The notes beneath the pieces were generated by a model. It was given only the letters and a program-made list of their open reading frames with translations. It was not told where the DNA came from and made no database searches. Below, in pieces: positions 11,364-38,314 of a DNA stretch of 64,000 nucleotides. The stretch lies in contig CM068757.1 in the NCBI GenBank assembly GCA_035084275.1, positions 9,858,001 to 9,922,000 of the forward strand. Direction: 5' to 3'. The DNA is from Hydrolagus colliei. Its lineage: Eukaryota. The translations under genes were made by a program, and so were the position numbers. Positions within the stretch are counted from its first letter, which is position 1. Each line of letters begins with the position of its first letter.

Positions 11364-12488
11364 TCATTCAAAGATAGCCTTCTTTTTGAATGAGCCCCGT
11401 TTCGACGGCAACTCAAAGATGGGTGCCATGAGAGTGATGCCCTCCGATTCCATGCTCTGTGCGCTAATGTTCGGGGTGGGCACCTTGACTGTGTTTCCAA
11501 ACTTGGAGTAATCGACCGAGTACTTCCCGTCTTCCTCCGTCACCACCGGCACAAAGCGATGGCCCCAGAGGATCTCGTCGGACAAGTAGGAGGTCCTGGC
11601 TTGGGTGGTGATGCCCGTCGTCTCCACCACCCCCTCTAGGACCACAATGACCTCCAGCTCCTGGCGTTGGAGATCGGCGGGCTTCACCGTGTACAGGGGA
11701 CTGTCCTTGTCGATGATGTGCGAGATGACCAGCGGAGACACCAGGAAGATGCCATTGGTGTCCACCGGGTTGTCCATGCGGATGTCGATCTGGTTGAGGG
11801 GCTGGACCTCGCCTTCCTCGGTCTCGGTCTTGCAGACCACCTGCATGCGGATGCTGGCGCTGATGATCATGCTCTTCCTCAGGTCGCCCACCCTGAACAT
11901 GAAGCACAGCTGGCTGTGCCTGGGGGCGATGACGGCGTGCTTGCTGAAGATGAGGGTCTCGGCGCGCCGGTGGGCTTGCGAGGTCTTCATGAAGATGCAG
12001 CCCAGCATGATGGCGTTGATGACCAGCCCCACGATGTTCTGGACGATGAGCACGGTGATGGCGCTCGGACACTCCTCGGTGATCATGCGGCCGCCGAAGC
12101 CTATGGTCACCTGCACCTCGATGGAGAAGAGGAAGGCGGAGGTGAAGGAGTGGATGCTGGTGATGCACGGCTGGTTGCTGGACGGGCGATGGAGGTCACC
12201 GTGGGCGAAGGCGATGAGCCACCAGATCATGGCAAACAGCAGCCAACTGCACAGGAAGCTCATGGTGAACACCACCAGGGTATAGGGCCACTTGAAGTCC
12301 ACCAGGGTGGTGAAGACATCCTGGAGAAAGCGGCCCTGCTCTTGGATATTGGTGTGAGCCACATTGCAGGTGCCGTTCTTGGCTACGAAGCGAGCCTGGC
12401 GTCTCCTCTCCTTGAAGATGGGCTGGGACACGTCCTCTGCCAGACGCAGCACATACTGCTCGGGTCGGAGCGCTTTGCTGGCCAGCAT
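11364..12488 (-). CDS. KCNJ11: ATP-sensitive inward-rectifier K+ channel Kir6.2, single coding exon, 374 aa
   Basis: TIGFG selectivity filter, [15 protein letters not shown], short turret, FSKH (K185), [12 protein letters not shown] (R201), YSKFGN (G334). Intronless and directly downstream of ABCC8. Confidence 0.97.
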
Positions 12489-15222: not shown

Positions 15223-15360
15223 TTATTTGTCCGCACGTACAAAAGATGCAAACATTCCATCCACACATTCCAACAAAGTGTTCGGGGTGTCGTACTCCTG
15301 AATTTGTCCTCTTCTCATCACGATCACTAAATCTGCTTTCAAAATCGTGTGTACTCGATG
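15223..15360 (-). CDS. ABCC8: SUR1 exon 39 (last): [10 protein letters not shown]...FASFVRADK*
   Basis: ctcctAG acceptor, 138 nt, TAA stop. Confidence 0.95.
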
Positions 15361-17486
15361 CTAGGAGATAAAAGGCACAGGGAGCATGTTAATATCCGCA
15401 GAACAGGCAGGTTCCTTCACCGTCTGGGAGCTTTCTGTATGTGCTTTTAGTCACTGACAGCACATACACAATTTCAATTTCAGCCAAAATGCCAATCTCT
15501 GCCCCTGCTGGTGTTAAACTTAACAGTGCTGAAAAGCAAAAGTTATAGAGGTATCAGGTTAAGAAGCAAGTTATCACCCAAAACTACTTTTGTTAGTGCC
15601 AGTCAGTGTTTTAGTTGCAAGAATGAAACATGCTGTTTGTCACCCTCTTGCAAATGACATACACATCACCTCTTGAAACAGCTCTACAGATGGGACTTCA
15701 CCAGAGCTGCAAAGGTACTATCCCATGACAGCAAGTTGGCCACAGAATCATTTTCTTGAACAGTGCCCTTGTTTAGAACTAAGATCTGGTCTGCATCCAG
15801 AAGGAGGGAAACCCGAGGCTATGAAGGTAAAGGAGCAAAGATCTTTCAGTGTTGCATATCTCTGAACTGGAGTAATGAAGCATTGCCTGTGCTAGCAATA
15901 TGTCTTCTCTCAAATGTTTACCGCCCACTATTTCTCTCATTTCACTGTTATATTCATTGATTTATAGCCTGGTCTAACAACAAAATGTAGAAATATTTGC
16001 CAAAATTACAGGGAAATTTGGTCCCACAAGTTTCAGTTGTGGCAGGGAGGGAGGAGCTGGGTTTTGTGTGCAAGCAGCGATGAAGTAAATTTATACATCA
16101 TTACCTTTCAGGATCAGTAATAGAATCATTAATCTCTCCCAGTGGATGGGCTTCACAGCTGGAAGCCATTCTCTCTTACCATGTCAATCATTTTGTTCTC
16201 AATCATTCTGCAGGCAGTTGTAACACCAGTTTTACTTTTTGATTAATATCTATGTGCAATAACATTTACTTGTCCAAATTTATCAACTCCATTATTACAG
16301 CAACTACTATTACATTATCATTCAATTGAATGATTTTATTCGAAGAGAATTGACTATTTGGCAAGTTGAGGGAGTCTATTAAAATTATTATTTGGGGGGG
16401 TGGGGGTGGAAAAAAACAAAGAATTCCTGTAACTCAGTGGTTAGAGCAATTGCCATGCAAGTGAGACACCTGGGCTTGAATCCAGGCAGGGAAACAGATT
16501 GGGCAAGTTTCCACACGCCTTTGTTTTCCGAGTCGTAAATAGGAACCCGTTGACAGTCAACTGGCAGATTGCTATTTGGATATTAATCCTTCAAAAAATT
16601 GTGGTCACTCAATCCACAACTGTTTGTGGGGGACATTGCTGTGCACAATTGGCTGCCATGTTTTGCCCACAAATATACAGTATATTCTGTGAAATGCTTT
16701 GAGACATCTAGAAGATGTGATAAGGCACTATACCAAATGCAAGAATTATTATTACTCAGACCGATATTAGGACATGGGACCCTCTTATCAAACAATGGTG
16801 GATGCAGAATCTACAATAGCTTTTAAAAGGAATTAGATAAATATTAAAAGCATAAAAATGGAAGAGGGAAAGAATAGGACTAAATGGAAAGTATTTTCAG
16901 ATTGGTACAATGGACCAGATGGTCTCTTCTGCTGTAATCCAATGACTAATAATATTTTCATACTAAGTCCTGTGACAGCAGTTAAGTATTTTTCACTGGA
17001 ATCTTCAAAGGAAAACATCGCCTTAGCCATTACACCAGCAACAATATTGTGCCTGTAGTTCTCTCCGGGCCTTAGGTGCCTGCCTACATTCATTGTTAAT
17101 TTCTAATTGACTGGCAGTATATGTCCACTCTACTATTCCACCTCCAGATTACGATTCTTCATGAACTCTGATTCTGGCACTAAACATTTGGTTTAATTTC
17201 AAAATAACCATTTACTTCTCAGATTCATATTGCTAAATGAGAGAATCCAATGTCCATCCAGTTTACGTTCCACCATCCTAGTAGTTGTATGCACACGTCA
17301 TGTCCTAAATAACATACTGTATCCCACAATCTTATCAAGTTTCCAGCACCTTGGGCTATCCTCCCGACGTGAAAGGCGCTCTATAAATGTAATTTTGTTG
17401 TATTTCCTAAAATAAATTATCTCATTTGCTTTTGAAAGAATTGACAATGCATGTTTTAATGTAGCAGAAAAAAAGTTGTCACTTAC

Positions 17487-17549
17487 AGCTATTGTCACAA
17501 CCGTGCGATCAGCAAACGCTGTCATTACCACCTTCTGCAAAATATTTTC
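17487..17549 (-). CDS. ABCC8: SUR1 exon 38: ENILQKVVMTAFADRTVVTIA
   Basis: 63 nt, AG/GTAAGT. Confidence 0.95.
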
Positions 17550-18448
17550 CTGCAAGAAAAAAAAGGCTCGATCACACCTACAAAGTCCAAATCACACTAG
17601 TAGTGGAATTATTCACTGCTAGTAATAGGATGGTATAGAGGAAAGCAATGAATGTGATCCTCAGTTTTAAAGGGATTAGCAATGTGCAAATGTGCCAGTC
17701 CTAAACTGGCTCTTCAGACAAAGAGACTTCTTGAAAGAGGCGATTAAGCTGCCGAACAAAATAGAGGATGTAAACTCCCAATGAGATTTCCGGTACGAGA
17801 TAGGAAGTGCTGTTTCCACACTGAAACTCTTAACTCATGTTTCAAACTAAGGCCCCTCCAGACACAAGAAGTCTATGGCAGGGAGACAACTCGTATCGTA
17901 TACAAAGCACAACAATGATCATGTATATCATATCATCACACCTCATCAACTCAGCAAAATTGAAAGCTCTTTACACCTCTTAAATTATTCACAAGTGTGG
18001 GTTGACTGACTATTACAGGGAAATTGATCAAGGAACAATAATGCTCTGTCAGAACATCCTCCATGGTTTTTTTTGTCTAGTATTACTTATGTGCATGTGA
18101 CCACCAGGAAGGTGAACTGGGTGGACTTTGGTCTTTTTTCATCTAGCATTTCTTATGTTACTTCTTAAAACTTTTATCATTAATATCCACTCGCACACCC
18201 ATACAAAGCAGTCGCTGATTGTCAATTAGGTTCATGGGCTTAAGTTCATGGGCTTAAATTCCATTTGTCTCCACCTTGTGGACACAATGAAGAGTCAAAC
18301 TGATCCTCTTGCACTGGGACATACTTGTGCGCAGGTCATACACAATTAGTTTAATCACACAAAATATTTTCTCACCAAGTTGATTTCACAGGGCAAGAGA
18401 CACATCATGCCAGTATTGCAAAAGTTCTTCTGCTGAGCTCTAGTTTCA

Positions 18449-18679
<231 letters not shown>

Positions 18680-19519
18680 TCACTATTTATTCCTTTGACA
18701 GAACACTAACCTTCCTATTCTTTGCTAAATCCTTTCTAATGAAAAAGTTTACAACTACACAGAGGTGTGCAAGAATGCCAGAGCTTGTAAGGCATAGTTA
18801 TAACCTGGGTTAATAGAAAAGTACAGAAATGTTTGTTAAAAAATGTGGGGAAATTTGCCAAATTTGAAGAAACGTGGGGTTTGATTGGTGCTATTGAGGT
18901 ACATTTTACTGCCAACCTACAATTTTTCACTTTTCTATAAAAAGCATTTGATTTAAATTGGTCCTTTGGGCCTTTGTATATCATGTCTGTTTGCTTCATG
19001 CTCAAGTTAAATTCACTGTTTTTTATCTGCTTATTTTTAGAACAGGAGGGTACAGAGGAAAGCAATGAATGTGATCCTTAGACTCAAAGAGACTTCTCAA
19101 AGGGAATCTTCTTGAAAGAAACATACATCCAGTGCTAGTAAAAGAACACTCGGCAGTATGCATCTGTACACTTATCAACAATTTCTCCTAGCTCAACAAG
19201 GTACTCGTCTTCAACTGAATATTGCACTGAAAGTGCAGAACTTCCAACAATGTAGTGCTTCCCCAGAACTTCACTTGAGTGTCAGCTGATCTGAGTTAAC
19301 GCACTGCTTTTATGCACCAACACCATTGCCTTCTTATAAAGTCAGCAACCCATTGAGGTTGACCACAATGAAACAGTGGAGTTTATCATGTTGTATTCAA
19401 GTGGCCATAACTTTTCTTAGGAGGACTTTTACACAGTATAGGACCTACCGTAGTTAAAACATTGCATAGAGTTATTACATTTTATTTCAGGTTACCATTA
19501 TAACAATATTAACCATTAC

Positions 19520-19623
19520 CTAAACCTCCAGGTAATGCTTTCACCACGTGCTTTAGCTGTGCAATCTCCAGAGCCTCCCACAGCATGCTGTCTGTGCACT
19601 TTTTCTCTGGATCCAAATTGAAC
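19520..19623 (-). CDS. ABCC8: SUR1 exon 36: FNLDPEKKC...KALPGGL
   Basis: 104 nt, AG/GTAATG. Confidence 0.95.
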
Positions 19624-20670
19624 CTGTCACAGAAAGCACTTTTACAAAATATTCTTACTAAATCCACTTTCGACTCAGCTTATAATTTACTATATTTCAG
19701 TAATATGGGAATTGCACCTTCCAAACCACTCTAAAACTTTCACTGATGCACACAGCTGCTCACAGGCACAAGACACAGAACAATAGATTCACATTACCCA
19801 TGGAAATAGTGACAAAGGGGCAGAAGCACAAGAACATTTTGGATGAAAAAGGCACCTCAGCCCATTTGACTTAATCTTTCTCTATACTATTCTCCCATCA
19901 CAACTTAATATCCTGGTCTCAACCACCCTTTCTTACAACCTGTTCCAGTTGTTCATTACCGTCTGGGCTCCAGCACCTTGGGACATCTTCCTGATGTGAA
20001 AGGCACTATACAAAAGTAATTTTTTTGTTGTAATAGGTAAAACATTTTTTTCCTGGCATCCGCCTCAAATTTGCTCTTAGCAACCCTAAATATGGGTCCT
20101 GTTGTTCTATTGTCTTTACTTTCCAATCCCATTGACAATTTCATTCTCCTCTAGCTCAAAAGTGGAATAAATGAGGAAGTAAAATGAAATATGGAAGTGC
20201 CAGTCACAGACAAGATGTTGTATTGCCCCCTTCTATGTTAAGTGAGTGGGCGGAGGCTTGGGGTTGGTTGTAAGGGATATACAGAGGTAGTTCTAATCTA
20301 AACTTATTCCTGTGTTGCTGAGACTGATGTGGAGATGGGGTGGTGACCCATTCACATTGTCTGTACAGGGAAGGAGGATTGAGTGGTGCAGATACACATC
20401 TATACTGCAGTTACGAGGAGCACCCAGGTTTTACAAGACACTGCAGGAGTTGTACAATAAAGGCCGGAGATTGGGATACTACACTGTTAATTGGCTCCAA
20501 AACATTTCTGTGATTAAATTAATCAATAAAAAATAAATAGATAACCTATCTGAACAATGTACACTTAAAATATTCAACACTTTCAGCTGCCAGGGCTCAT
20601 ACCAACCTGCCGCCTCTTTGCCCCCCCCCCCCCCCCCCCCCCCCACTTCCCCCCAATGGACTGCCACTCA

Positions 20671-20799
<129 letters not shown>

Positions 20800-21096
20800 T
20801 CATCTTATTCAGCACTCATTTCTCTGCACTAGGGAACGGCGATATGGGATTTTTCCGGATATGGATATATCCGTTTGCTCATACCTGCTTAAACCGATCT
20901 ATCGAGTTTTTATACTGCGCATGCGCGTGCATTTAAGGTGCGCGCTCAGTCGCGGTGCGCGCGCATTGACGGTGCGTCCGCAATGACGATGCGCGCGCAG
21001 TCGCGGTGCACGTACATTTCGAAATGCGTGCTCTAGGTCCAGAAAGTTTGTAATGTTGGTGTCAAGGTCTGTTGAATTATACGATGTTGTTTGCTC

Positions 21097-21390
21097 CCTA
21101 CCTCCCCCTCCTCTCCTCTCCTTCTCTCCCTCCCTCTCTCCCCCCTCTCCTTCTCTCCCTCCCCCTCCACTCTCCCTCTCTCCTCTCCCTCTTCCCTGTC
21201 TCCTCTCCCTCCTTTCCCCCTCTCCTTTTCTCCCTCCCTCCTTTTCCTCTCTTCCTCTCTCCTTCTCTCCCTCCTTTCCCCTCGCTACTTCTCTCCCTCC
21301 TTTCCCCCTCTCATTCTCTCCCTCCCTCTCCTCTCTTCCTCTCTCCTTCTCTCCCAACTTTCCCCCTCTCCTTCTCTCGCTCCATCTCTA
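21097..21390. repeat. CT-rich low-complexity tract inside the hAT element
   Basis: Directly visible. Confidence 0.9.
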
Positions 21391-21677
21391 AACACAAAAT
21401 AGAACACACACACCAAAAACAAAATCTAGAGATTTATTCTCCTCCATTTCTTGCTTGAAAGTAGCATGTAATGTCCACGTGTAAATGAGATCTATTACAA
21501 TAGAAAAGCGAGAGACAGACAGTCTGACTGTTAGAGTTAGAAGCCAGATTATCACTGCTGTGTGTGTCTAGTCAGACACACACAGCAGTGATAATCTGGC
21601 TTCTAACTCTCTCACACACAAAAATAACACTTACAGCCACAAAATGCCACTTATTTTTATGTAGTCTGAAGTCTGAA

Positions 21678-22118
21678 TTAATGTCCTTCGCTATGTGGTT
21701 TGTACCTGGGGTCCAGTTCGTTTAGGAGTTGCTTAAACCCAAGCGTCTCAACAATCGCCATTGGCAAGCTCTCCTTTGCTATGCAAAAAGTGATAGCGTT
21801 CGTGATACTTTGCCACTTTTTGTCCCCTCTCTGGTACAATGTTCTCCTCTTAAATAAAGCAGGAATTGTTTGAGCTGCACTGGCCCCACTACCTGTCGCT
21901 TTCTCCGAAGCGCTGGTTCGACTTCCTGCTGTTGTCGACAATGATTTCGCTCTGAGGGCAGCGTGCTGGGCGGGGTGGTGCTGCTTAATGTGATGTCGCA
22001 GGTTGCTCGTGCTCGAATCAGATGTCTTAACCAAGACCTTGCAAACTGTACATCTATACACACCATTACTGACTGCATTGTTTTCAAAGTAGTCCCATAC
22101 GGGGCTTCTTTTTCCCAT
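21678..22118 (-). pseudogene. Truncated hAT transposase N-terminus (BED zinc finger plus following helical region), 146 aa
   Basis: RSPVWDYF...CTVC...TSNLRHHIKQHH, then ITNAITFCIAKESLPMAIVETLGFKQLLNELDPRY. No DDE catalytic domain. Confidence 0.9.
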
Positions 22119-23488
22119 GATGAGAAAGGTAAATTTTTAAACTACAATTTTCAGCGATGCGACTTTGTTAAGACGCCACGACTCACGTCGAGTATACACA
22201 GTAAAGTGTGCACGCGCATCGGATGTGCGCGCCCGTTAATTGTGCACGCGCACCGAATGTACGCGCATTCCATGCTCTAGATCTAGGAGGTTGCAATGCC
22301 GGCGACAAGGTAAGCTGGAAAAGATCGCATTACACTGATAATACCAACAATATTGATATATTGCCAGGAATGATATTAAAAATATATCGATGTATATTTT
22401 TAAAATCGAATCTCTCGATATAATAGTTTTTTTAGAATCACCATATCGGCATACCGATCTGAAAATCATATCGGGTTTAATCGAAAAAACGATTAATCGC
22501 CGTTACCTACTCTGCACCAGCTTCTATTAACGACAAATTGCATTTAGATAGCACCGATCATGTAAGGGTAACTCAAGAGGCTGAAACACTCAATGTACAG
22601 AACAAATGACATTTAGTTTAATTTCTTTAAAAGAAAATGACTTGCTCAATTTTCTAGTCACTTCGCTCTGCAGTAAATCCCGTGAGCCACTTTGAGATGT
22701 TTTGACAGCAAAATAAAGTGTTCTATCTAATGATTTATGAAAAAAATCAATTGAAGTGATATAAACAGCACAACAGATTTCAACTCTGAAATCCACATTT
22801 AGTTTAATTTCTTTAAAAGAAAATGACAAATTGGGTTTCCCCCTTTTTCCCCATCCAAATACTTATTTATCATCTTCTAGTCTTCACATGCAGCTTCAGC
22901 ATTCACAGAAAACGTACGAAATATGAAGTAAAGCCCCATATTGTTTCCCCTTGAATTTATTTTATATGTTTCCCTTTGGCATAGATGACAACATCACCTC
23001 ACAACCTATTAGATAGATAATAATCCTCACATTTGAATTATCCTCACAGAAATGTTTTGGAGCCAATTAATAGTGTAGTATCCCATTTGATGATGTTAAC
23101 ACATCTCAAAGTGCATCACAGAATAAATTAAGGTGAACTGACTATATATTTTGTGGGCGAAACGCAGCAACCAAATTACGCACATTAGTGTCCCACAAAC
23201 AGTTGTAGATTGAGTAACAAAATGATTATTCGTATTAAAGAAAAATCTTTTTTGAAGACGATAGAATTAAATTCCGGTTGCTTCATCATTTTAGTAAACT
23301 GGCTGCAGCAATGCACTGATAAACTGTCGGCATCTGTAACAATCCCAGGCTCCTCACTCAAAGCCCACTCATTACCATAGTCCAGATCCAAGAGAATGAC
23401 CCAGAGTCAGGAGGGTGTGATCGGTCGCTCTGTACATCACAAACTAAGTGTGGGCTATGCCCAAAGCAGCAAAATTACAATGCCGTAC

Positions 23489-23567
23489 CTTCAAACATAT
23501 CCACCATTCTGAAAAACGCTAAAGAGAAGGAGGACTTCCCACTGCCAGTCCGCCCACAGATCCCCAC
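23489..23567 (-). CDS. ABCC8: SUR1 exon 34: NBD2 Walker A GRTGSGKS
   Basis: 79 nt, AG/GTACGG. Confidence 0.95.
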
Positions 23568-24515
23568 CTGGTAAAGAAAAACATTTTAATATGCAATGAC
23601 TCCTGTTCGCAATAAGAGAGGAGCCAGAGGGAGATTAAAACATTGTCTTGCCTAATGTTCCAAATCCTTTTGAGGCTAGCCTCCACTTTCTCAGAGAGAG
23701 ATCGACTGTAATAGTCACTAGCTCCAAATGCCATTAATATTCCATCACCATGGCCAAATGGAACAGAGTGAGTTAGGCTTAACTTTCCTATAAAATAATA
23801 ATATTAATGCTTGCATTTTATATTGCACCTTTCACACGATCAAAGCCCTGTAAAACTATCTGTAGGTGAAACATTCCTAGCTGTTAATGAGGGGCCACCA
23901 CTGACCATGAACATGTAGATGATATTCCTATTGATTCAGTGTCACACTGTCTGGTATATTTTGCAGACATTTGCAAGATATTTGGATACAGATATTCTGC
24001 TGACAAATGGATGAATGAAGTTGGAATTGGGTGTCCGTTTCAATAAACCAGCAAGAAAGATGATGGGGAGTGCAGGAAAAATTAATATCAGTGCGAGGCA
24101 GATGTGGAATGAAACATGACACAATCTAAATTTCCATTTATACAGCGCTTTTCATGTGGTGAGGACATCCCAAAGCATTTGACACGGCTGGCTGGACACC
24201 CAACTACAGGGAGCGAAAGCATGGTCAAAGAGGTAAGTCTTGAGATGCAGTATTAACAATGAGAAAAACTTGCATTTATAAAGCACTCTTCATGCAGGGT
24301 AGCATCTCAGAGACGTAACCCAGGGTTGGGGATCACCCAGTAATATAAAACTAGTGTAAAATGTGCAGGGGAACTCCAAATGTTAAAATAATTTGAAAGC
24401 AGCTAAACAAGTTCCTGTAAATGTAAAAGATTTGGGCTAATTAGGAATCTTTTGAGAAATTGAATAGGGTTTTACCACTTCCTGAAATGGTTTCTATTTT
24501 ACTGAGAGCCGTTAC

Positions 24516-24646
24516 CTTCTGCCCTGGACTGAAGTGGGCATTCACGTTCTTTAAGACCGGCTTGAGGGTGCTGTCATACCGTACACTCAGGTTCTGAATT
24601 TTGATCTCCCCTTCATTAGGCCAGTTTGGGGGAATCTGAGCAGAAG
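24516..24646 (-). CDS. ABCC8: SUR1 exon 33: ...PNWPNEGEIKIQNLSVRYD...HFSPGQK
   Basis: 131 nt, AG/GTAACG. Confidence 0.95.
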
Positions 24647-25135
24647 CTGCAACAGAATAATCATAAAAATAGTTCTTTCATTTGATATAGCGCCGTATCA
24701 CATCATTGAGACAAATCAAAGCACTTCACAGAATATAACAATAATCCTTGTATTTGATAAAGCGGCTCATTGTGTCTTCTAGACATCTGAAAGCGCTTCA
24801 CAAAAGATACTGTAAAGTTGAGTGACTGAATTTCATGGGCACAATACAGCAACCAAATGCACGCAGCAGTGTCCCAAAAACAGTTGTGGATTCAGTAACC
24901 ACATTTTGTTTTCAAGGATTATTACCCCCTGGAAAATGTTTTGCCAATTGATTATCAACTGGGTTCCTATTAACTGAATTATCAATGTCCCAGGCACACC
25001 ACAGGACACTGGGATCAGGCCTGGGACTCTGCAGAGCTTCCGAGGAGAGGAGTGCACAGACAGTGTCTTTTCTGGTGATATTAACTCGTGGCAAATAATG
25101 TTGCTAAGAGTGAAACGTGTTTGAGGCATGCTCAC

Positions 25136-25256
25136 TGAGGAGTCCGTCGTAATTCTCAGTTTCGATCTGGAGAAGTGCGTTTATTCTTTTCACCGCACCC
25201 AGTTGCACTTCCATGTCTGCAAGGTTGCGGACCATCCAGTTCAAGTAGTTGGAAAT
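25136..25256 (-). CDS. ABCC8: SUR1 exon 32: [14 protein letters not shown]...
   Basis: 121 nt, AG/GTGAGC. Confidence 0.95.
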
Positions 25257-25966
25257 CTGTGGGGAAGGAAACACCAGAAAGCTGATCAAAACCATGACTG
25301 TCTCCTTGCCAGACACACACTGAATCAAGTCTACCGAGAGCAACCTTTCCTCTTGTAACAAGGCTGTTCATTCATCAAAGTTTCAAAGTCCTGGACAATT
25401 CAACAAAAACATTAACAACAAAAATTGGGGCGGCTACATAATATTTTATTACATGTGGTGGGGCAGTGCTTGAAAGCTTCATCCTGCCTCCAGCCAAATA
25501 CTACAACTGCTTCCGAAACAGTGAGAAAGTTTGGGAGGCGGGCAGTGGCCAAGAGAAGTAGATGACGTCCTTCATGAATCCAATTCATGTAGCTCTGCAA
25601 TGCAAATTGTAGCTCTGCTACTTCCGCTGGCACTTTGAAAATAAGCTTCCCTCAGCACAGAGCAGTCATTCATCTGGGACCTCAGTATTCTTGGTATGTG
25701 CCACAATGGGCACTGCACAGTGCATCAGAATTGGATAGGTTTGAAAACAAATTTGCTGGGATATGGGGTAAGAGTGGGGGAGTGGGACGGCTCTTCAAAG
25801 AGCCTGCACAAGGACAATGAGCTGAATGGCCTCCTCTGTGCTGCCTATGATTAACAAATTAAGCCATTAGGTGAGTCTGGATCTTTTGGTTCTCAGGAAT
25901 AATGTTTTCAGCTCTTAAACCGACTACGATATGCTTTGTGTATTCACCGATAATAAAATATCTTAC

Positions 25967-26080
25967 CATGAGCGCGTAAGTGAGCCCCAGACCCACGAGA
26001 CCTGAGGCCAGGCCGTAGTACAGGGAATTGGTGATGGAAGCCACAGCCGCGATAAGAACCACACAGGCCCCAATGTATTC
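25967..26080 (-). CDS. ABCC8: SUR1 exon 31: EYIGACVV...GLTYALM
   Basis: 114 nt, AG/GTAAGA. Confidence 0.95.
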
Positions 26081-26462
26081 CTGCAGAAATCACAGCAATC
26101 AAGGATCACAACCAAGTAGCTTTGGATGAAGTCGACAGCAGTGAGCACAAACACAACTGGTGTGAATCCAACCAATATTTCAGACAGGCTTAAGAATCTC
26201 TAAATCATCAGTAAAGCTTTTGTCAAAAAGCCATCTGCTGTTTATCTGGCATCTCATCACAGTCGCTCATTTTTCTTTTAATCATTCCTTTCCCAATCAT
26301 TACAATCCACTGTTCCGTTGCTATCAGATTAAGATATTGATTGTCGTGATTGACCAGCAGTGAGCCGAGAGCTCGAGTCTGCCACTGTTTGTAAATTTAC
26401 AATCAACTTTCCCCAGCTACCCACGCCATGAGTAATACAAGTGTCGGAGCTTAATACAGTAC

Positions 26463-26565
26463 CATGCGAACTTCTAGCCATCGGTTGGCAGCGGTCAGGA
26501 ACAAAGAGGCAATGTTGTTGGCGTCAGTGTGTTCCAGCAGCTGCTGTCTGAAGCGACTCTCCTGC
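26463..26565 (-). CDS. ABCC8: SUR1 exon 30: ...[26 protein letters not shown]
   Basis: 103 nt, AG/GTACTG. Confidence 0.95.
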
Positions 26566-28152
26566 CTGTAAGATATAGTGACACACATTTCACTCACAGC
26601 CAGTGCACTGGATGGACATCCGCGCACAGAATCAAGGAGCAGGAAATGAACTCACAGTTTTACAACCCAGAGTTGGAACTAAAACCAGAAATCACCAGAT
26701 ATGCAGAGCATCAGAAGAATGGCAGGTAAGAGATGTCATTGGTTACTTAAGGTACGGATCCCAGTGCCAGTGTTTGACAAGGGTATGTGTGTCAAATTGG
26801 CTCGTTGATAGCGCTTTTGCCTCCAAGTCAGATGGTTGTGGATTCAAATCCTACATTGGGACTTGAACTCACATAGTCTAAGATAATAATAATACTAATC
26901 CTTGCATTTCATATAGCATCTTCTAGACAGCTCAAGGAGGATACAAACTAGATTGTGCTTAAAGCCATTGAGAAGCAAAGCACCAAGTTAGAGTACAACA
27001 CAATAGAACAAAATTACATTGATAGAGCGCCTTTCACATCGGGGTGAATACACATCTGTACCTGATATAAATACCAGCCTCTTCAGCATTGTATACACTT
27101 TATTTTGTTGAAAACTAGGGTTTTAACTTAAAGGAAACTTATTTTTTAATAAATATTACTACCTTGTGTGGTTTCACATTAAAGCAGAGAACACAAAATG
27201 GTACTTAGGCCCCCAAATCCCTGCACCCTTCATATGCCGAGCTAAGTCATCTCACCAGCTATTCTCACTGTAAAGATGTTTTGCACATATACTCTTTCAA
27301 ACAAACAGTGCTTGCGAAAACCCAATGTGGAACAAAAGAGAGAACGTTTCTGCTGGTCATTGAGGTTGGTCCTATGATACCTTTTTCTCAATTTCCCGAG
27401 CCTTTGTCCCCTATAAGCCCCCCAATAACAAGAACAAGGATTTATATAGCGCCCTCCATGCCGAATAGCATCTCAGAGAACATAAATATAAACACTCCAG
27501 GAAGATTACTAACGTTCAAGTAACGGAATTTCTCCTATGCATGTCCAATGGACAGATCGGATAACCAGCTCATTACTGCAGTTAAGGTGAGTAAGTATGT
27601 CCCCATTAAAGTTTAAATACCAATTGAGAATTCAATTTCACCGCTTGTCCATGCAACCCTGACCTCCACAACATCTCTCATGCAGAACGTCTAGACAGTC
27701 AATAAAATTGGATTGATTTATTGGTCATTTTACAATCTGACCTCTTTGTTCCCCTCATTAATGTTGGGAGTGAAATATTTGTTTTTCTGTTTCTTCTCTT
27801 TACTGCCTAATGCTGGTACAAAGTGACAGACACAGTGACAGACACAGGTGTATTTCTCTAGTCTCCTGTGCCAGCGAGGAATCAGCTCAAGTTTTTCACT
27901 GCTGGTAGAAAGTTACATTTTATACCCAAAAGGAGGGCATTTGGCTCATTGTGTGTGTGCTACTTCTATTTTTCCTTCTTCTGTTTCTTTAGGCTTTTTA
28001 AAAAAATTATCCACTTTCCATCTCTCTCCCCAAATTATGTAACACTTTTACTTTCCTTTTTAAAAAAAATCATTCTATTATGCAAGCTACAAACTGTATT
28101 GCTTGGGTCTTTTGTACTGAGTGTTTTCTGCTATTAGCACCGACTCCATGTA

Positions 28153-28239
28153 CCCAGGTAGCAAGCCCATGTGGGGCCCATATGGGCATGGATCAACCCA
28201 AATTGTCCCATATCGGGCCATATGAGTTTGCTACCTGGG
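28153..28239. mobile_element. 87-bp MITE with CCC termini (CMC/CACTA-like); second terminus copy at 51757-51790
   Basis: TIRs CCCAGGTAGCAA and TTGCTACCTGGG, flanked by TA on both sides. Confidence 0.7.
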
Positions 28240-28646
28240 TAATAGAAGAGAATGAAAAAACAATGTTTCAAAAACATCTCTCTCACCAATGAATTCAGTC
28301 TCACTGATTGTCCATGTAAAAAGACATGAACAACATCAACAAAATTTAATTTGTAGTGTGTCTTTTCCATCGGGAGGACATGCCAAGGCGTTGAATAATG
28401 TCCACAGTAAGTATCCCTCTGAAACAAATTCACTTATCCACAGATCTCACCTGATCAATAAACTATAAGGAGAGTTATCACTAACACGACACTACCCACC
28501 ATTTGTGTCAAGTAGAGTATGTGATAGCAGTTTATATACAAGTATCCTTGCAATAATCCTTTCATTTGATGTAGCATCTTATGTCAGAGAGGTCTGAAAG
28601 CGTTTCACAGGATCTCATAGATATGCATCACTACATACATAATAAA

Positions 28647-28657
28647 TGTGTGTATAT

Positions 28658-28688
<31 letters not shown>

Positions 28689-28701
28689 ATATATATATAT
28701 A
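28647..28701. repeat. Compound (CA)n/(TA)n microsatellite
   Basis: Directly visible. Confidence 0.9.
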
Positions 28702-28822
28702 GCTGAATTACCATATGGTCTGTTGTATACAACTAACATAAAAAAAGCAGAAGGCACATTCTTTACCACTCCCCAGCATCAAATCCCTTTGAACTCCTTT
28801 AGAGTTTGTATCCATTGATTTA

Positions 28823-28939
<117 letters not shown>

Positions 28940-29894
28940 TCATTAATCTACCCGCATGCACTGCACATCTCACAACATGTCTGTACAGGTGCTTACAATA
29001 CACAGGTTAGTAGGTTGGGAGAGGGGAAGGGATGGAGGGCGAATGGTTACTGTTAGACAAAAATACATTTACCACTATGGGGAAGCAGGTGAAGGAAATA
29101 AACTTATCTTCAATGTGACATTAAATATCTTCATTATTTGACTGATACATAATGGGGGACAATCAGTATTTGTATTTTCCAAACAATACGAGAAAGTGGA
29201 TTTGATATAGTGCGTTACACATTGGGAGATATCTTAAGGCACTTCCCAAGATTGTAATGTAAAGTACAGTCACTGTGTATTTTGTAGACAAACGCAGGAG
29301 TTAATATGTACACAGTGATGTCCCACAAACAGCCATGAAGTGAATGACCAATTGTATTTGAGGTGATAGATGGCTAGGTCATAGTAGTGCCATTGGATCT
29401 TTGATGTCCACCTGAATAGGCAGACAGGACCTTAATTTTAAAGTCTCATCCAAAGATGGCAAGACTCACCCCCCAGAGAATTCAGTAGTTTACAAGGTGT
29501 GAAGTTGCTCTGGAGTTGGGAAGCTCTTCTGAAACTGTATAGTAATTATTGGGTTAAAGGCAAGATTTGATTCATTCGATTTCAATCAGGTTTATTATAA
29601 ACATAGAGGATAGTCGACTGTGCCCCATGATGTCTCTTAAACTGCATTTTAACCCTCTCCAGATGAGATCTTCTGATTAGAGACTGAATTAAAAAAATTC
29701 TCAAATTCTTCATGCTTTGAAACACTAAGAAAACAGTCAATCTAGACCCAGGCAACATTTTGCCTTTGTTCTATGGAGTAAACAACATACAACCCCTCCC
29801 CCATTCCCTTAGGCCATATATCTTGCAATAAAAATGTTTTGAAGCAAAATATATATTATAAACAGCCTTTCTTCTGACTGACATAAAGCACTTA

Positions 29895-30071
<177 letters not shown>

Positions 30072-30619
30072 CTAATTCTCCAGAGTTTATTCAAAGGCCA
30101 CACCACCTGATCCCCAAATTTACAGTTCACACACAGTGGTAGGCAAGAATAATGCTAAGGATTCTTGCATCTGATAAAGCATTGCGTCATTGAAACGCTT
30201 TGTGGAATTTTGCAACAGCGATTTGCATCCGTGAACAGCCTCCTTCTTGCGCTATTAGCATCCAGGGATCAATGCCATGGCCTTAGAACATTGTGCACAT
30301 TAAACTCAGTGGTAAATGTATTTGTGAATAAAACTCAGACTTGCTGGATGGTGTATACTGTGTATGTCAAATGAGATTAGGATTGGGTTGGCTATGATAT
30401 GTCCTCTCTCCTCACCCAACATGGCTGTATGACTCAAAGATTACATGTGATAAATCTCCCTTGGTAAAGGTAACTATATATAAGTTATATATATAATCCT
30501 AACAATTGATATACTGGCTTTCATATCAGGTGGCCATCTTAAAGTGCTTTACTGAATGTATTGTACAGTTTAATAGGTCTAATTGTAGGTGAATGCAATA
30601 GCTAAGTTGCACACGATAA

Positions 30620-30835
30620 TGTTCCGCAGACTTGAAGCGAATGAGAAATTTTATCTGAGGAATTGTTGGCCAGAACATTGGGAGAAACTCCCATCTCTTT
30701 TTGAATAGTGCAATGAGATCTATAATATCCATCTGAGCAAGCAAATGGATCGTCGGTTTAACATCTCATCCAAAGGACAGCGCCTTCAATAATGCAGTGC
30801 ACCCCCAACACTGCATTGCAGAGTCAGCCTCACAA
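30620..30835 (-). mobile_element. Older SacSINE/Deu-type SINE fragment (others at about 29240-29470, 32445-32690, 44550-44695, 57530-57800)
   Basis: Diverged copies of the gatgagacgttaaaccgagg / gagtcagcct and Deu-core segments. Confidence 0.6.
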
Positions 30836-31749
30836 TGTGATTTCTTCAAAATAGAAAGGGCAAGAGGGAAATGTGGACAGAAAAACACAGCTTGATGCTT
30901 TATTAAAAACCCTACGAGAACTACGCTTCAACGTTTTGCATTTCCTTTCCACCTTTTCAACATCTGAGCATTTATTAGCTGTGTCTATAATGAAGTCTTT
31001 TATTTGACTTTGCTATTGGACACAGGTATTAATACATCCAAACTTGATACACATTCATGCATTATTTATTCATATTAAAGTGCCTGGTTTCTTATTTGGG
31101 CCTGGTGGTTAAAGGGGAAATACATTGCAGTTAGATACTCGTAATCCCAACATATACTGAGGCAGATATCTGTTTATCACTGGAGTGTCTCCCTTGACAC
31201 CTTGCTAGCGTTTTGTTCTTTCAGATATTCTAATTATAAGTACACTAATGACATTCAGAAACAGATCCATCATCCGAAACTAGAAAGCCCCATTCACCCT
31301 GTCAAATAGCGTGTGCTTTATTCACTATGTCTGCTGCCAGCCTGTCTCTCAGCATGTGTTCGACAATGCCTTGTGTTGAAGGGATGTAGCCTCATCCCGC
31401 TTGTCCATAATTTAACACTAAGAAGATTGAGTCACTGAGTTCACAGAGCATCAGATTCTCAGTACACAAGGTTCACAAGGTTCTCGGTAACTGAATCACA
31501 TTGGGGGGAACCCATTGGTGGTTGTTTAAGAAATATTGTGTCTGAACTAGTTTTTGATAGTTAACCAACACGTTTGTTGTATTGATGAGATGAGCCATGG
31601 TCTTAGCCTTTGCAAGACAAAGATTGAATGGCTAGATTTGTGGCTACAAGTTGTTGACTTGGATACAATGCCAGTTTTTTTTTAAAAAACGATTTGAACC
31701 AAGGGACAAACCTGAGGAAATTCACACAGATCTATCTTTGGTGCATTCA

Positions 31750-31938
<189 letters not shown>

Positions 31939-32857
31939 TTATTGAGCTTTAGTCCTTGTATTTGATTATAGTAGTTGTAATTTCTCAGAGAGGATCACAG
32001 GGAATGTCTAACATTCGTGAATGTGCTAACAGTTCCCTTTGCTTGTCCTCTACTCTTTCCCTTGCTCCTGAGACTTGTCCGAGTGATATCCGCAGTGCCC
32101 TCTTGTGGCTACCTAGCAATCCAGCAGAAATTCCTCAATAAACCACTTTGGCTCTTGACAGGACAGAAGTTAGCGACACAATTACAATATTTTGTTCATC
32201 TCAAACCTTTAATGTCTGGTGTATACTTGATCCATTGGGTTGGGCTCCAATACACTATCCTGGGTGAAGGATATATAAATGCAATATAAATGCAAGTTGC
32301 TGTTGGTGATAGAAGATCTTAATTCTCTGTGTCATTCCACATAATCTTTCATGATATTAAACAGAGCCGAACCAAACATAAAATCCTCCGCTGGATGTTA
32401 CTGTAAAATGTAATGACCGTGTATAACCAGTTTGCACATAGCTATATCCTACAAACAGCCATGAAGTGAATGACCAATTTTATTTGCCAGATTGTTGGGC
32501 AGGACACAGGGAGAAACCCCCTCCTCTTTTCAACTAGTGCTATGGAATCTTTAATGTCCACCTGAACTGGCAATACAAGACTTCAGCTTAACGTCTCATT
32601 GAAAGGAAAGCCAGCACCGGGAGTCAGCCTCGATTATGTGAGCTTGAAGTCCTGATGTGGGACTTTAACCCACAACCTATGTGCAGTTTGGAGAGAAATT
32701 CCCTCTTAGAAACTCTGACTCTCTCACTACCGCCTTTCTTTGTAGGGCATTCCATGTCCTTACAACCCTACATGTAATACAAATCTATGCTAACCTCTCC
32801 CAAGGCTCTCTTGGTAATTATCTTAAATCATTGCCCTCAAGTTATCGACTCACCAAC

Positions 32858-32883
32858 GGGGGGGGGGGGGGGGGGGGGGGGGG
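32858..32883. repeat. G26 homopolymer (also C24 at 20621-20644 and C22 at 48638-48659)
   Basis: Directly visible; homopolymer lengths may be imprecise. Confidence 0.85.
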
Positions 32884-33760
32884 AAATAAATTTCTCCCTG
32901 TTCAGCTAATACTGGATCTTTATTGCAACTCCAAAGCAGACCCCCTTAAATCAACAAGGTCACTTCACTTAAAGATAATGGGGTGGCGTAAATCCTTCGC
33001 CTTGTGATTTCACAGTACTTAATGTGACACGTCGCAAATTGCCAATGGGATGACGGGACACAAGCTTACTTGGGAACTGACCTCACCACAAGCATCTAAG
33101 TGCCAGGTTAAGCCCATTGTAACTGCATGTGAATAGATGTTCCTCCCTCTGGCATTGCATGCAATCTAAATCTCTAATGGTAAAATGCCAAAGGTCCCTA
33201 TGTCATCTCCTCTGCCCTCAATTCATTGGGAATAATGTCCCTTTGTTTCACTATACTTGCTTTATTTTTATGAAACAGTACATCGCAGAAATACATTGGA
33301 CAATTTTACTGTCATTATTTCACAATGATATGAAGAGACAGTTGAACTAATGCATCGAAAAGACATTCCATGGCTACCTGGAGGCATTTCCCTTTGTCAG
33401 AATAAGAACTTGAATCAGAATTACAGTGCATTCCGGGACATGACATTAACCCTTGTGGTGATAGCAGTACTGTACTTAACCAATAAAAAAGCTCTCTCAT
33501 AAACCATGCCTTCAGCCCCAGTCCTTCTCGTTTCCCTCTGAACTCTGGCTCCCTTTTGGTCTTTGTAAAGCACCTTAAAATCTTCTCCCTATATGAATTT
33601 GAATTCTTTTTCAATGGGCTGCCTTCCAACCAACTCCAAAATCGACATATGCCCCTTTTCTCAGACACGTCGCTAAAATCATACTGTCCAATCGTATATT
33701 CAGTCATTGTGTGGGATTGAATTATGTGGATTGACAATATGACATCGAGACAGGCAGTAC

Positions 33761-33927
33761 CTCATAGGTGCCAGGATGATCTTATTGAGCAAGTTCTTGT
33801 GTAACTCCTTTGTCACTTTAAGGCCTGTCCACTCAACAGCAATGGAGGTGACTAGACAAAGCACGATGCCCAGACAGCAGAGAATGCTGAACACGATGCT
33901 GTATGAGGAATGGCTGAATCGGCAGTC
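33761..33927 (-). CDS. ABCC8: SUR1 exon 26: [13 protein letters not shown]...KIILAPM
   Basis: 167 nt, AG/GTACTG. Confidence 0.95.
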
Positions 33928-34251
33928 CTAGGGTGAGAAATATTGAAACGCTCAAACTGGAAGCAGTGGTTTCCCAATAATAATTATAATACTCCTTGCA
34001 TTTGATATAGCTCCTTATCACACCTTCAAGACATCTCAAAAAGCTTAATCAAAAGTGAATGGACTGCATATTTTTGTAAGAGATATGTTGCAGCCAATTG
34101 CACACAATAATGTCTCCCAAACAGTCATGGATTGAGTGACCAATTTATTATTTTATTTTGAAGGAATTAATCCTGTAAAAGTAATTTCTCAATCGACTAA
34201 CAAGCAGGTTCCTATTTACTGCCAGGTAAACAGAAGCATGTGGAGTAAGGG

Positions 34252-34410
34252 ACAAAAACAGAAGTTGCTGGGGAAACTCAGCAGGTCAGGCAGCATCCAT
34301 GGAGAAAGGAAAAAGAGTCTCCATGGATGCTGCCTGACCTGCTGAGTTTCCCCAGCAACTTCTGTTTTTGTTTCAGATTCCCAGCATCTGTAGTATTTTG
34401 TGTTTTGTTT
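34252..34410 (+). mobile_element. Palindromic short element, copy 1, nested in a SINE
   Basis: Perfect 54-bp inverted repeat plus tail. TSD atgtggag(t/c)aaggg at 34238-34251 and 34411-34424. Confidence 0.85.
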
Positions 34411-35122
34411 ATGTGGAGCAAGGGAATGTGCCCAATGTTTTGCACTGCTGGGAATCAAACCCAGATCTCTCGCTTGCGAGGCAAGTGCTCTAACCACTGA
34501 GGTACAGGATTCCACAATAATATCTTGGGAGATTGAAAGTCCACCTGCTCTTAAATTCTAGCATTTAAGATCATTCTGGCCAATAGAGAATTCTTAAAAT
34601 CCATGTGAAGGTTGAAGCCCATTTCACGCATTTAGAACCTGCTTGAGAATTAAGACCGAGTTTAAGAAATGTCTCCAATTTTGTGTAATACAGTACTTAA
34701 ATTTTAAATCAAAAAGGTCTTACGGGTCAAGATTCGATGGATTATTAGGCCTGTAGTTTTAAAACCAATGAGACTGAGAATCGCATGAGTAAGAGCTATT
34801 TATTGTTGGTGAATTCTCAGTTGTGTTTCCTAATCATGTTATTACAATCTGGCAGAGTGCTGAGCTTTGCAGTGTCCCACCAATTTAATTTAACTTTAAT
34901 ATGCTAGTGAATCCACTTCTCATGATCAGGGGAAACCAGAGCTCCAACAGCATCAGCAATAACCAGCATGCAAAACCAACTGCTGGATGCTTTGGTTAGA
35001 GGTTGACTCAACTCAATGTCACTGGCTCTTTAATAACCTTAAAAAGATAAGGAACCCTGTGGCAGTTTTCACCATGCTTCCCCACTCCCAGCCATTAAGT
35101 CACAGCTAAACCAATCGTTCAC

Positions 35123-35370
35123 CTGGACATTGGAACAGTTTGCTCTCTCGGCCTCGATCTTCAGCTGAATGGCGTCAGATGTCCACTTTGCCAGCCAGTA
35201 GTCAATGGCCACCATGACTGTGTGCTTGAACAGCTGGGAGAGGATGAGGAGAGGCAGCAGAAGGCAGCCCGCTGCACTCAGGTACTTGCCACAGGCTCTC
35301 CAAGGCAACTTGGTTCGCTGCCGCAAAACCGATGAAAGGTTGTCTTCATCATCACTCTCCAAAATGTCCT
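35123..35370 (-). CDS. ABCC8: SUR1 exon 25: [12 protein letters not shown]...RANCSNVQ
   Basis: 248 nt, AG/GTGAAC; keeps the NCS glycosylation sequon. Confidence 0.95.
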
Positions 35371-35845
35371 CTGCAGAAAACACAGACACCCAAAGACTCA
35401 TTTGTGCACCCACCCACACACACAAGCACAAAACAATCCTTCAGAACTGCAGCCTTCTCTTACACTGTCTTTGTGTTATTCCCATTATCTTCTACCCAAG
35501 ACTGCACCATCTATACCATGCCTTCTCTTGGTGAGTCACTGATATTCGTTTTCCAAGTTAGCACAGAATAAATCAGGATTTAGAGACCAACAGGGAAAGA
35601 ATCAGGGTGGAAGCTAGCTGCTGAAACCATCTAACTGAAGGGAGCAGATGTGGACCGCCAATCGACTAATAACCAGGTTCCTACTTACTTCCAGACAAAC
35701 AGACAGGTGTAAAGTAAGGACATTTTCCTAAGATTTTGCCCTGCCCTGGACTCAAACCCAGAACTTCTAGTGTGTGAGGCGAGTCCTCGAACCAATTTGC
35801 TACAGGAGTTTTTATGAATATTGTTTAAACATAAAATATTTTTAC

Positions 35846-35951
35846 CTTCATCCTCATCTTCCTGCTGTACTTTGAGGAGCGCCTCCCGGGAGTACATCGC
35901 TCTCCGCAGGTTCTTCCGTTCCAATGCAGTCTTGCTTTCAGCCACTGTCTC
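35846..35951 (-). CDS. ABCC8: SUR1 exon 24: ETVAESKTALERKNLRRAMYSRE...EDEDE
   Basis: 106 nt, AG/GTAAAA. Confidence 0.93.
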
Positions 35952-36379
35952 CTGCAGAATATGAGGCGAACTTTATCTTTCTTGCACATGGGTTGATGTC
36001 GTGGGGCAAAATTCAGAAGATGCCATTGAGAGTCATAAGAGCCTATCAGTCTCTCACCCTACCCCCACCCCCACCCCCAAATGATTAAATTGCAGTTTTA
36101 AATGGTCAGATTCTTCAAGAGCATCAAGACACATTAAGGTGGAATTTCTCTGATACATAATAGAAACAGTAAACAGCAAAAATGTGGATACAGTTTATCA
36201 CATCTTTTCACAAGTTACTTGGCCATTTGTCATCTTATATAAACATTCTTCACCCAAGTTTCTCTCATGTGCTGAGCTCCCTGTCACTAATCATACCCAT
36301 TTGATAATTAATTTCTGACCAATTTTATAAACCATGTGTGATATCAGACCAATCTCTGTGATTGCGAAGCCTTAAGAAC

Positions 36380-36505
36380 CTTTTCCAGTTGTTGATCCTG
36401 GCGGTTCATTAGGGTTTTCCAGTGCTCGAAGAGTTCTGGATCGGAATTCTGAATGTCCTTGAGGGTACCCTCTCGTTGAATGGTCCCATCCTTCATTGCA
36501 ATGAT
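36380..36505 (-). CDS. ABCC8: SUR1 exon 23: [13 protein letters not shown]...QQLEK
   Basis: 126 nt; weak donor AAG/GTTCTT. Confidence 0.9.
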
Positions 36506-36943
36506 CTGTGAGGAATAGATCATCACAGTGTTAGCATCGATTGGGCTACTAAAATGCAGTGGATGGGGTAAACACACTGGAGAATTAATATACAAAACAA
36601 AGTATCAAATTTACCAATTTACAGTATTGAACATTATTCAGATTTCATGTTAACATTTCATGTTTGCTTCAATATTACCAGTTAGGTTGGGTTTTTCAAG
36701 CAAGAAAAAAGATTTCAGAGTGGACTTTAAGATGGTACTTTCAGTTAGTCTGAAAATTCCATTTAGCCGTAGGCGATTCAGCCACTATTGGGATCTCTAT
36801 TTCCCCATGCCCCCAATAGCCTGTTCTACCAATTTTGTAGATCATGTTAGATCTAAGGGATAGCTTTTCCACGCTTGGATTTGCTATAAACAACTCCTCA
36901 TTGCAAAACCAGAAGCAAGCAACAACGGCTGGAGATGCCTCAC

Positions 36944-37081
36944 CCAGTCAGCATGGGGCAGGTACTGTAACTTGTGGGTGACCAGCACCACAGTCCGCTT
37001 CTCCTCCCGCAGCAATTTGAGGATTCCATCCTGCATCAGGTGGTCGCTCAGATGGACATCCAGGGCTGAGAATGGATCATC
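36944..37081 (-). CDS. ABCC8: SUR1 exon 22: DDPFSALD...HADW
   Basis: 138 nt, AG/GTGAGG. Confidence 0.95.
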
Positions 37082-38233: not shown

Positions 38234-38314
38234 CAGAAATACCACATTTGTCTGCGGGTACAACGATCTCGCCACACTGATGCGTTGGCGCTGCCCACCG
38301 CTCAGATTGATGCC
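38234..38314 (-). CDS. ABCC8: SUR1 exon 21: NBD1 signature LSGGQ ... VVFL
   Basis: 81 nt, AG/GTAGGT. Confidence 0.95.

Follow-up and report, generated by a model that had tools for sequence, protein, structure and literature searches.

Genes and features of the locus

The DNA analyzed here (the window, a stretch of 64,000 nucleotides from the genome assembly of Hydrolagus colliei) carries on its minus strand the KCNJ11 gene, which codes for Kir6.2, the pore subunit of the KATP channel, and a long series of exons of ABCC8, the gene for its partner SUR1. A run of N is found at positions 1342-1508 of the window. The features on which this work is based are given below, with positions referred to the window.

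11364..12488, minus strand: coding sequence of KCNJ11 (Kir6.2), one exon with 374 codons plus stop, identified from the list of open reading frames, PDB and Pfam matches and the tree
11379..11387, minus strand: KKK (AAA AAG AAG), residues 368-370 of Kir6.2, replacing the Arg-based ER-retention motif RKR/RRR
12342..12344, minus strand: codon 49 of KCNJ11, CAA (Gln), the Arg50 position of Kir6.2; the plus strand reads TTG
15226..63874, minus strand: exons of ABCC8 (SUR1) for residues 194-1581, located by tblastn; the gene continues past the end of the window
46215..46223, minus strand: the own RKR ER-retention motif of SUR1 (VINRKRPTREE), retained
63635..63874, minus strand: L0 exon of SUR1, residues 194-273, with a PDB match to human SUR1 (E 1e-39)
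63839-63841, minus strand: K205 of SUR1, a contact at the Kir6.2 ATP site, retained
63845-63847, minus strand: E203 of SUR1, a contact at the Kir6.2 ATP site, retained

The KCNJ11 open reading frame is intact and codes for a protein of 374 amino acids in a single coding exon. When this protein was compared with PDB chains by phmmer, the top match was Kir6.2 (5twv, E 3.5e-180, 601.8 bits), with lower scores for Kir6.1 (555.3 bits) and for Kir3/Kir2 channels (388 bits or less). The Pfam domains IRK (PF01007, 7e-58) and IRK_C (PF17655, 2e-65) were both detected, as well as a selectivity filter with the GFG of the Kir6 type (TIGFGGR), and the identity with human Kir6.2 is about 73%. Among the best 120 database matches every named protein was a KCNJ11 orthologue, the rest being unnamed predicted proteins; the closest was KCNJ11 from Callorhinchus milii, with 89% identity, followed by others at around 76-79%. 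In a maximum likelihood (ML) tree the window Kir6.2 appeared as sister to Callorhinchus KCNJ11 with a support of 100/99, and both proteins have in common the holocephalan-specific residues S4, F65, V73, I109 and V254.

KCNJ11 adjoins ABCC8 on the downstream side, head-to-tail and on the same strand, and around 2.7 kb separates the end of the last ABCC8 exon (15226) from the start codon of KCNJ11 (12488). Gene order and orientation are the same in Callorhinchus, where a gene for an ABC transporter of 1572 amino acids ends 3.4 kb upstream of KCNJ11, also on the same strand. The two ABCC8-KCNJ11 loci are collinear, with introns, intergenic DNA and UTRs alignable at about 73-85% identity, and the conservation of KCNJ11 at the UTR level is about 85%. 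These data show that the gene of the window is the true syntenic KCNJ11 orthologue, from a holocephalan species different from C. milii. A confusion with the paralogues Kir6.1 or Kir6.3 was considered and excluded by the scores, the tree and the synteny with ABCC8. The Callorhinchus gene differs from that of the window in its Arg codon (CGC) for the R50 position and its RRR retention motif, in a tail that is 5 residues longer and in a branch less than half as long. No protein identical to the window Kir6.2 was found by exact look-up in the protein collection, and searches for a second KCNJ11 of the Hydrolagus lineage (with the full-length protein, with its N-terminal 130 amino acids and by exact look-up) gave nothing closer than Callorhinchus. 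A literature search on KCNJ11 together with holocephalans or elasmobranchs gave, among the papers listed, none in which this gene was mentioned, and no mention of Gln at the Kir6.2 R50 position in chimaeras.

The partner gene was studied in the same way. About 30 collinear ABCC8 exons, covering residues 194-1581, were located by tblastn with a human SUR1 sequence as query, and the best 120 database matches of the joined exons were all ABCC8. Over 1276 ungapped columns, SUR1 is 98.2% identical to Callorhinchus ABCC8, with a balanced number of lineage changes (10 in the window versus 7 in Callorhinchus), and in the C-terminal exons 1 of 186 residues differs from Callorhinchus, as read by eye. 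The L0 exon conserves the sequence REVKPPED, and the full alignment with Callorhinchus revealed no lineage-specific change in the L0 linker, the changes falling elsewhere. Two residues of this exon, E203 and K205, face Q52 of Kir6.2 and the bound ATP. The closeness of SUR1 to its Callorhinchus counterpart, with E203, K205 and its RKR motif retained, shows that the KATP complex is clearly maintained as a whole. The contribution of K205 to ATP binding has been reported as 5-10 fold (PMC9700523).

Gln at the Arg50 position of Kir6.2

An earlier note on this DNA had claimed that codon 49 of KCNJ11 reads CAA and puts Gln at the position of the ATP-binding Arg50. This was borne out by our analysis, in which the phmmer alignments with Kir6.2 of rat, mouse and human (5twv, 5yke, 7tys) paired Gln49 with R50 with no gap nearby. 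CAA at codon 49 is confirmed as a genuine observation in the genome sequence.

The conservation of this position was studied in two sets of proteins. In the best 120 Kir6.2 matches, which span teleosts, other ray-finned fishes, coelacanth, amphibians, nine sharks and rays and Callorhinchus, the R50 column holds Arg in 119 cases and Gln in one; Callorhinchus and all nine sharks and rays have Arg. The alignment across chimaeras, sharks, rays and teleosts, proposed as a check in the earlier note, marks Gln as unusual in this way. The second set consisted of 28 shorter Kir6.x fragments spanning the motif, among them mouse Kir6.1 and fish proteins similar to Kir6.1 or Kir6.3. Arg was present in 27 of the 28 and Met in the remaining one, a kcnj11-like fragment from Fundulus, in agreement with the claim that Kir6.1 also has Arg here.

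The only Gln in the best 120 matches belongs to a KCNJ11-like duplicate of sturgeons (NIQEQGRF), found in two species, Acipenser ruthenus (XP_033909737.2) and Huso huso (KAK6472642.1). As in the window, this is a natural Gln at the R50 position of an intact Kir6.2 gene, which shows that Gln is tolerated there in an intact gene. In contrast to the window, the sturgeon gene is one of two copies, the sister copy having Arg, it keeps RKR, and it represents an independent event in ray-finned fishes.

At the DNA level, the orthologous codon is CGC in Callorhinchus and CGA in the stingray Hypanus and the white shark Carcharodon, the two outgroups used to polarize the codon. Since both outgroups read CGA, the CAA of the window is derived from an ancestral CGA through one G>A transition at a CpG. 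The base change is the same as human c.149G>A (p.R50Q), so that the human allele coincides with the window in position, in amino-acid change and in the G>A transition of the middle base of a CGN codon (CpG). The human ATP pocket is otherwise identical to that of the window. Both cases differ in their status, as human p.R50Q is a disease allele that arises de novo in the heterozygous state, whereas Gln49 belongs to the genome assembly sequence of a wild fish; the window protein further differs from the human one in two residues that are normal for fishes, N38 and T46, and in having no RXR.

Only one sequence, from one haplotype of one individual, is available, and CAA could correspond to an allele that is rare, or heterozygous in the sequenced animal, or, with much lower likelihood, to a base error of the assembly. 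We consider this unlikely. The surroundings of codon 49 are clean, with no homopolymer run, in an intact open reading frame and with the single assembly gap of the window 10 kb away. It is true that CpG transitions are the most mutable class and that the same change recurs de novo in humans, that protein collections gave no second sequence of the lineage, and that at a strongly constrained site a segregating variant is a priori about as likely as a fixed one, by an order-of-magnitude reasoning rather than a computed value. Nevertheless, the same protein has many other derived changes, including the destruction of the RXR motif through several events that is described below, and as other functional motifs of Kir6.2 have been changed and fixed on this lineage, the prior for a fixed R49Q is raised.

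The ATP pocket, the retention motif and the rate of evolution

The inhibitory ATP pocket of Kir6.2 is formed by N48, R50, I182, K185, Y330, F333 and G334, together with R201, R54 and E179, and all of these residues but R50 are present in the window. The equivalents of N48, I49, Q52, R54, E179, I182, F183, K185, R201 and L205 are unchanged, and so are those of Y330, S331, F333, G334 and N335. The equivalents of I182, K185, R201 and G334, described as intact in the earlier note, were indeed found as I180, K183, R199 and G331, G334 being a small residue that gives room to ATP (PMC9700523). The residues of the pore, the selectivity filter and the PIP2 site are also unchanged. A compensating change was sought in the Kir6.2 ATP pocket and in the SUR1 L0 contact, and none was found in these two places. 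Gln49 lowers the status of the protein as a canonical ATP site, not its identity as KCNJ11.

The equivalent of K39 is Asn (N38) in the window, as the earlier note had stated, although its possible role in a special tuning of the channel did not hold. Asn is present at this position in 113 of the best 120 matches, zebrafish among them, and the whole stretch from F34 to F54 matches zebrafish Kir6.2 with the exception of R49Q. The native KATP channel of zebrafish beta cells shows a mammal-like ATP IC50 of 22.6 µM (PMC5367309), and the K39A mutation leaves the IC50 unaltered (PMC9825998). On these three grounds (its frequency, the zebrafish IC50 and the behavior of K39A), Asn at the K39 position is ordinary outside amniotes and takes no part in any special tuning. 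N38 and T46 (the K47 position) were considered as meaningful differences and excluded, both being majority states that are also found in zebrafish, with its normal KATP.

The absence of RKR in the C-terminal tail, also noticed earlier, was corroborated by the alignments. An R-x-R was found at the retention motif in 110 of the best 120 matches, Callorhinchus having RRR, whereas KKK takes its place in the window, where the tail ends in KKKAIFE followed by the stop. Alignment of the DNA with that of Callorhinchus showed that the change from RRRPVSPK to KKK involves an in-frame deletion of 15 bp and two AGR>AAR transitions, in such a way that the destruction of the motif took at least three independent events. 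A frameshift or a truncation as the origin of the short tail was excluded by the same alignment, in which the stop and the four codons before it are unchanged. When the tail was read by eye, neither a replacement RXR nor a canonical KKXX was found.

Arg-based signals are generally reported to be intolerant of Lys. Should KKK not work as such a signal, part of the Kir6.2 of the chimaera could arrive at the membrane free of SUR. Kir6.2 without RKR is known to reach the cell surface in the absence of SUR, still inhibited by ATP and not activated by MgADP (PMC9700523, PMC2901339). The window protein resembles the laboratory constructs Kir6.2deltaC26/36 and RKR>AAA in having no Arg-based C-terminal retention signal, but the deltaC26/36 constructs are truncated, whereas the tail of the window protein is a natural one (KKKAIFE) and coexists with a SUR1 that keeps its own RKR. 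As a secondary point, with KKK added to Gln49, two functional motifs of one protein have been hit.

The rate of evolution was compared with that of Callorhinchus. The pairwise dN/dS of KCNJ11 was 0.08 by ML and 0.17 by NG86, values that show a gene under purifying selection; a pseudogene was excluded by this ratio and the intact open reading frame. However, when changes were assigned by parsimony with sharks as the outgroup, the window branch accumulated 18 nonsynonymous and 21 synonymous changes versus 7 and 24 in Callorhinchus, a borderline difference (Fisher p = 0.048), and the ML terminal branches were 0.099 for the window versus 0.043 for Callorhinchus (2.3 times longer). The rate of evolution of KCNJ11 in the window is thus 2-3 times that of the Callorhinchus gene.

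The two Kir6.2 proteins differ in 40 amino acids, few of them at columns otherwise near-invariant or invariant in charge. The near-invariant columns that have changed correspond to G6A, E11Q (D/E in 120/120), K31Q (K/R in 120/120), R49Q, R368K and R370K, to which H/R193Q and R322K can be added as further changes of the lineage, several of the lineage changes being located in the cytoplasmic N-terminus. It is the pore subunit that has changed, above all in the cytoplasmic N-terminus and the distal tail, and not SUR1. Taken together, Gln49, the loss of RXR and the neutralized N-terminal charges point to Kir6.2, and not SUR1, as the subunit that has drifted or been re-tuned.

A relaxed constraint, in which the function of Kir6.2 is being lost on this lineage, with Gln49 and KKK as early signs of decay, would account for the longer branch, for the higher proportion of nonsynonymous changes and for the identity with Callorhinchus of 89% in Kir6.2 versus 98.2% in SUR1. 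We regard it as highly improbable, given that the open reading frame is intact, with start, stop and UTRs conserved, that the pairwise dN/dS is low, that pore, selectivity filter, PIP2 and the other ATP residues are unchanged, and that the obligate partner SUR1, encoded next door, is very strongly constrained.

Expected effect of Gln49 on ATP inhibition

The role of R50 in the inhibitory ATP site, on which the earlier note relied, agrees with the structural literature. [quoted passage not shown] In molecular dynamics simulations, contacts with the beta and gamma phosphates were detected (PMC9825998). The R50A mutation decreases ATP sensitivity with no increase in open probability (Po), the signature of a residue of the binding site (PMC2229524). 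A different pose of ATP, with the gamma-phosphate towards N335, also fits some cryo-EM maps (PMC9700523).

The association of R50Q with neonatal diabetes was likewise found in the literature. The human allele is heterozygous, de novo and pathogenic, and produces transient or permanent neonatal diabetes (PMC8458931). In a further report, it is classified as a 'moderate impairment', among the least severe neonatal-diabetes alleles (PMC3714477). A shift of the IC50 from 18 to 38 µM, in the homozygous state, suffices for human disease (PMC4901145).

From these mammalian data, the consequences of Gln49 can be predicted. Gln would remove the charge pairing with the terminal phosphates and would shorten the platform that stacks on the adenine, while the main-chain hydrogen bond to the adenine and all the other pocket residues would be left in place. 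The channel would still be inhibited by ATP, with an apparent affinity a few-fold lower and an intrinsic open probability unchanged or slightly lower, and for the same ATP/ADP ratio the remaining KATP current would be larger. The size of the effect may be compared with that of R50Q in Kir6.2deltaC26, which is said to have raised the Ki for ATP from ~117 to ~300-400 µM, about three-fold (Proks et al. 1999). By transfer from mammals, a less ATP-sensitive channel is the most likely single reading, and its chances are probably about even. The further step from Gln49 to a different tuning of KATP and a different set point of insulin secretion is speculation.

Two observations are to be set beside the prediction of lower sensitivity. 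As a hydrogen-bond donor, Gln can still interact with a phosphate, and N335 is conserved here; given the N335-facing pose and this hydrogen bonding, the net effect of Gln49 could be small. In addition, the effects of R50 substitutions depend on the context and are moderate even in humans.

Wild-type residues equal to human disease alleles are reportedly a known phenomenon (Kondrashov et al. 2002), and such residues are fairly common and often neutral in their own background. As in these compensated pathogenic deviations, the window residue is identical to the human pathogenic allele (p.R50Q) at the orthologous site, in an otherwise conserved and constrained orthologue. Gln49 could accordingly be real and fixed and yet compensated or effectively neutral, in such a way that the ATP sensitivity of Kir6.2/SUR1 is about normal and the set point is not shifted. 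We hold this as a possible reading, although a somewhat doubtful one. It would fit with the maintenance of Gln in one intact KCNJ11 copy of two sturgeon species, with the mildness of human R50Q among neonatal-diabetes alleles, with the alternative pose of ATP on the conserved N335 and with the retention of SUR1 K205 and its 5-10 fold contribution. Several other lineage-specific changes lie in the cytoplasmic N-terminus, and the compensators might possibly be found among G6A, E11Q, K31Q, H/R193Q and R322K. By contrast with typical compensated deviations, the site contacts the ligand directly, and no compensating substitution was identified in the pocket, where the other residues are the same as in other vertebrates and offer no candidate, or in SUR1 L0, which has no lineage-specific change. 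The sturgeons have a second, Arg-bearing copy, so that they give no proof of tolerance in a single-copy gene, and the near-invariance of the site over a very large tree suggests that most backgrounds are intolerant.

Weighing these data, Gln49 is most likely a real derived substitution that would weaken ATP inhibition a few-fold unless compensated, a conclusion that we hold with roughly balanced confidence. In mammals and zebrafish the KATP channel controls insulin release, the side chain of R50 is among the few in direct contact with the inhibitory ATP, and in humans a change in ATP sensitivity as small as two-fold causes diabetes. The only syntenic KCNJ11 of a wild vertebrate, with a disease residue and without the ER-retention signal responsible for enforcing a 4:4 assembly with SUR1, constitutes a natural mutant, and it would bear on how dependent on context the role of R50 is, and on the metabolic set point of chimaeras.

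A wider proposal, which we put forward as doubtful, is that the pore subunit was re-tuned in non-callorhinchid chimaeras, with SUR1 almost frozen, as an adaptation to a cold, deep-water, low-turnover physiology rich in urea and TMAO. If so, the re-tuning would comprise a weaker ATP binding (Gln49), the loss of an Arg-based assembly checkpoint and the neutralization of the charges at E11Q and K31Q, and the outcome would be a natural 'neonatal-diabetes-like' channel, open at higher ATP, perhaps with a SUR-independent Kir6.2 at the surface. If Gln49 is instead neutral or polymorphic, it would be one more human-pathogenic residue tolerated elsewhere, useful for the interpretation of variants and with no new mechanism. 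Gln49 is an unusual natural variant of a known channel and a candidate for a pathogenic residue as wild type, rather than for a new mechanism.

Divergence of the two channel subunits

The partner subunit gene ABCC8 (SUR1) was compared with its Callorhinchus milii counterpart, as was the adjacent Kir6.2.

Window 15226-63874, (-): ABCC8 (SUR1), residues 194-1581

SUR1 residues 194-1581 showed 98.2% identity to Callorhinchus, whereas Kir6.2 showed only 89%, in such a way that the protein divergence of the two subunits of one channel differs around six-fold.

Changes in the Kir6.2 termini and at the R50 position

Window 12456-12458, (-): KCNJ11 codon 11 (E11Q)
Window 12396-12398, (-): KCNJ11 codon 31 (K31Q)
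Window 11379-11399, (-): shortened Kir6.2 tail, in comparison with Callorhinchus

Changes to Gln make up 6 of the 40 amino acid differences between the Kir6.2 proteins of the window and Callorhinchus. E11Q neutralises a charge where all 120 of the nearest homologues carry an acidic residue (D/E), and K31Q does so where the same 120 carry a basic one (K/R). Both positions are located within or beside the N-terminal peptide that inserts into SUR1.

At the other end of the protein, RRRPVSPK is replaced by KKK through two AGR>AAR transitions and an in-frame deletion of 15 bp that shortens the C-terminus, the final four codons and the stop being the same as in Callorhinchus. An Ala occupies the equivalent of human S372, a reported PKA site.

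In other fishes, the sturgeon KCNJ11 duplicates (P0007, P0179 and P0180) show Q versus R at the R50 position, and a kcnj11-like fragment from Fundulus (P0145) has Met. Gln also occupies the position of human H46 in both sturgeon duplicates; the human substitution H46L is a severe iDEND allele.

Flanking gene and repeats

Window 243-620, (+): ORF encoding a C1-set immunoglobulin domain (Pfam, 9e-10)
Window 1293-1833: (CTCC)n / 28-nt tandem array
Window 12563-12574: G run, KCNJ11 5' flank
Window 12581-12618: 16-nt tandem repeat, KCNJ11 5' flank
Window 12643-12668: (GAAG)6.5 microsatellite, KCNJ11 5' flank
Window 7828-8184, 37742-38054, 58152-58363, 59045-59355, plus over 20 others, both strands: interspersed repeat copies

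The C1-set ORF has 83% DNA identity to the Ig-domain gene flanking KCNJ11 in Callorhinchus (20611-21152 of L001, its ABCC8-KCNJ11 locus). The only N run of the window (1342-1508) falls inside the (CTCC)n / 28-nt array. The G run, the 16-nt tandem repeat and the microsatellite lie in the KCNJ11 5' flank (12563-12668).

The interspersed repeat, around 140-350 bp long and with many copies in the window, was also detected in L001 (1-137, 504-846, 11625-11796 and 19566-19892), and this element common to both is probably a holocephalan SINE-like element.
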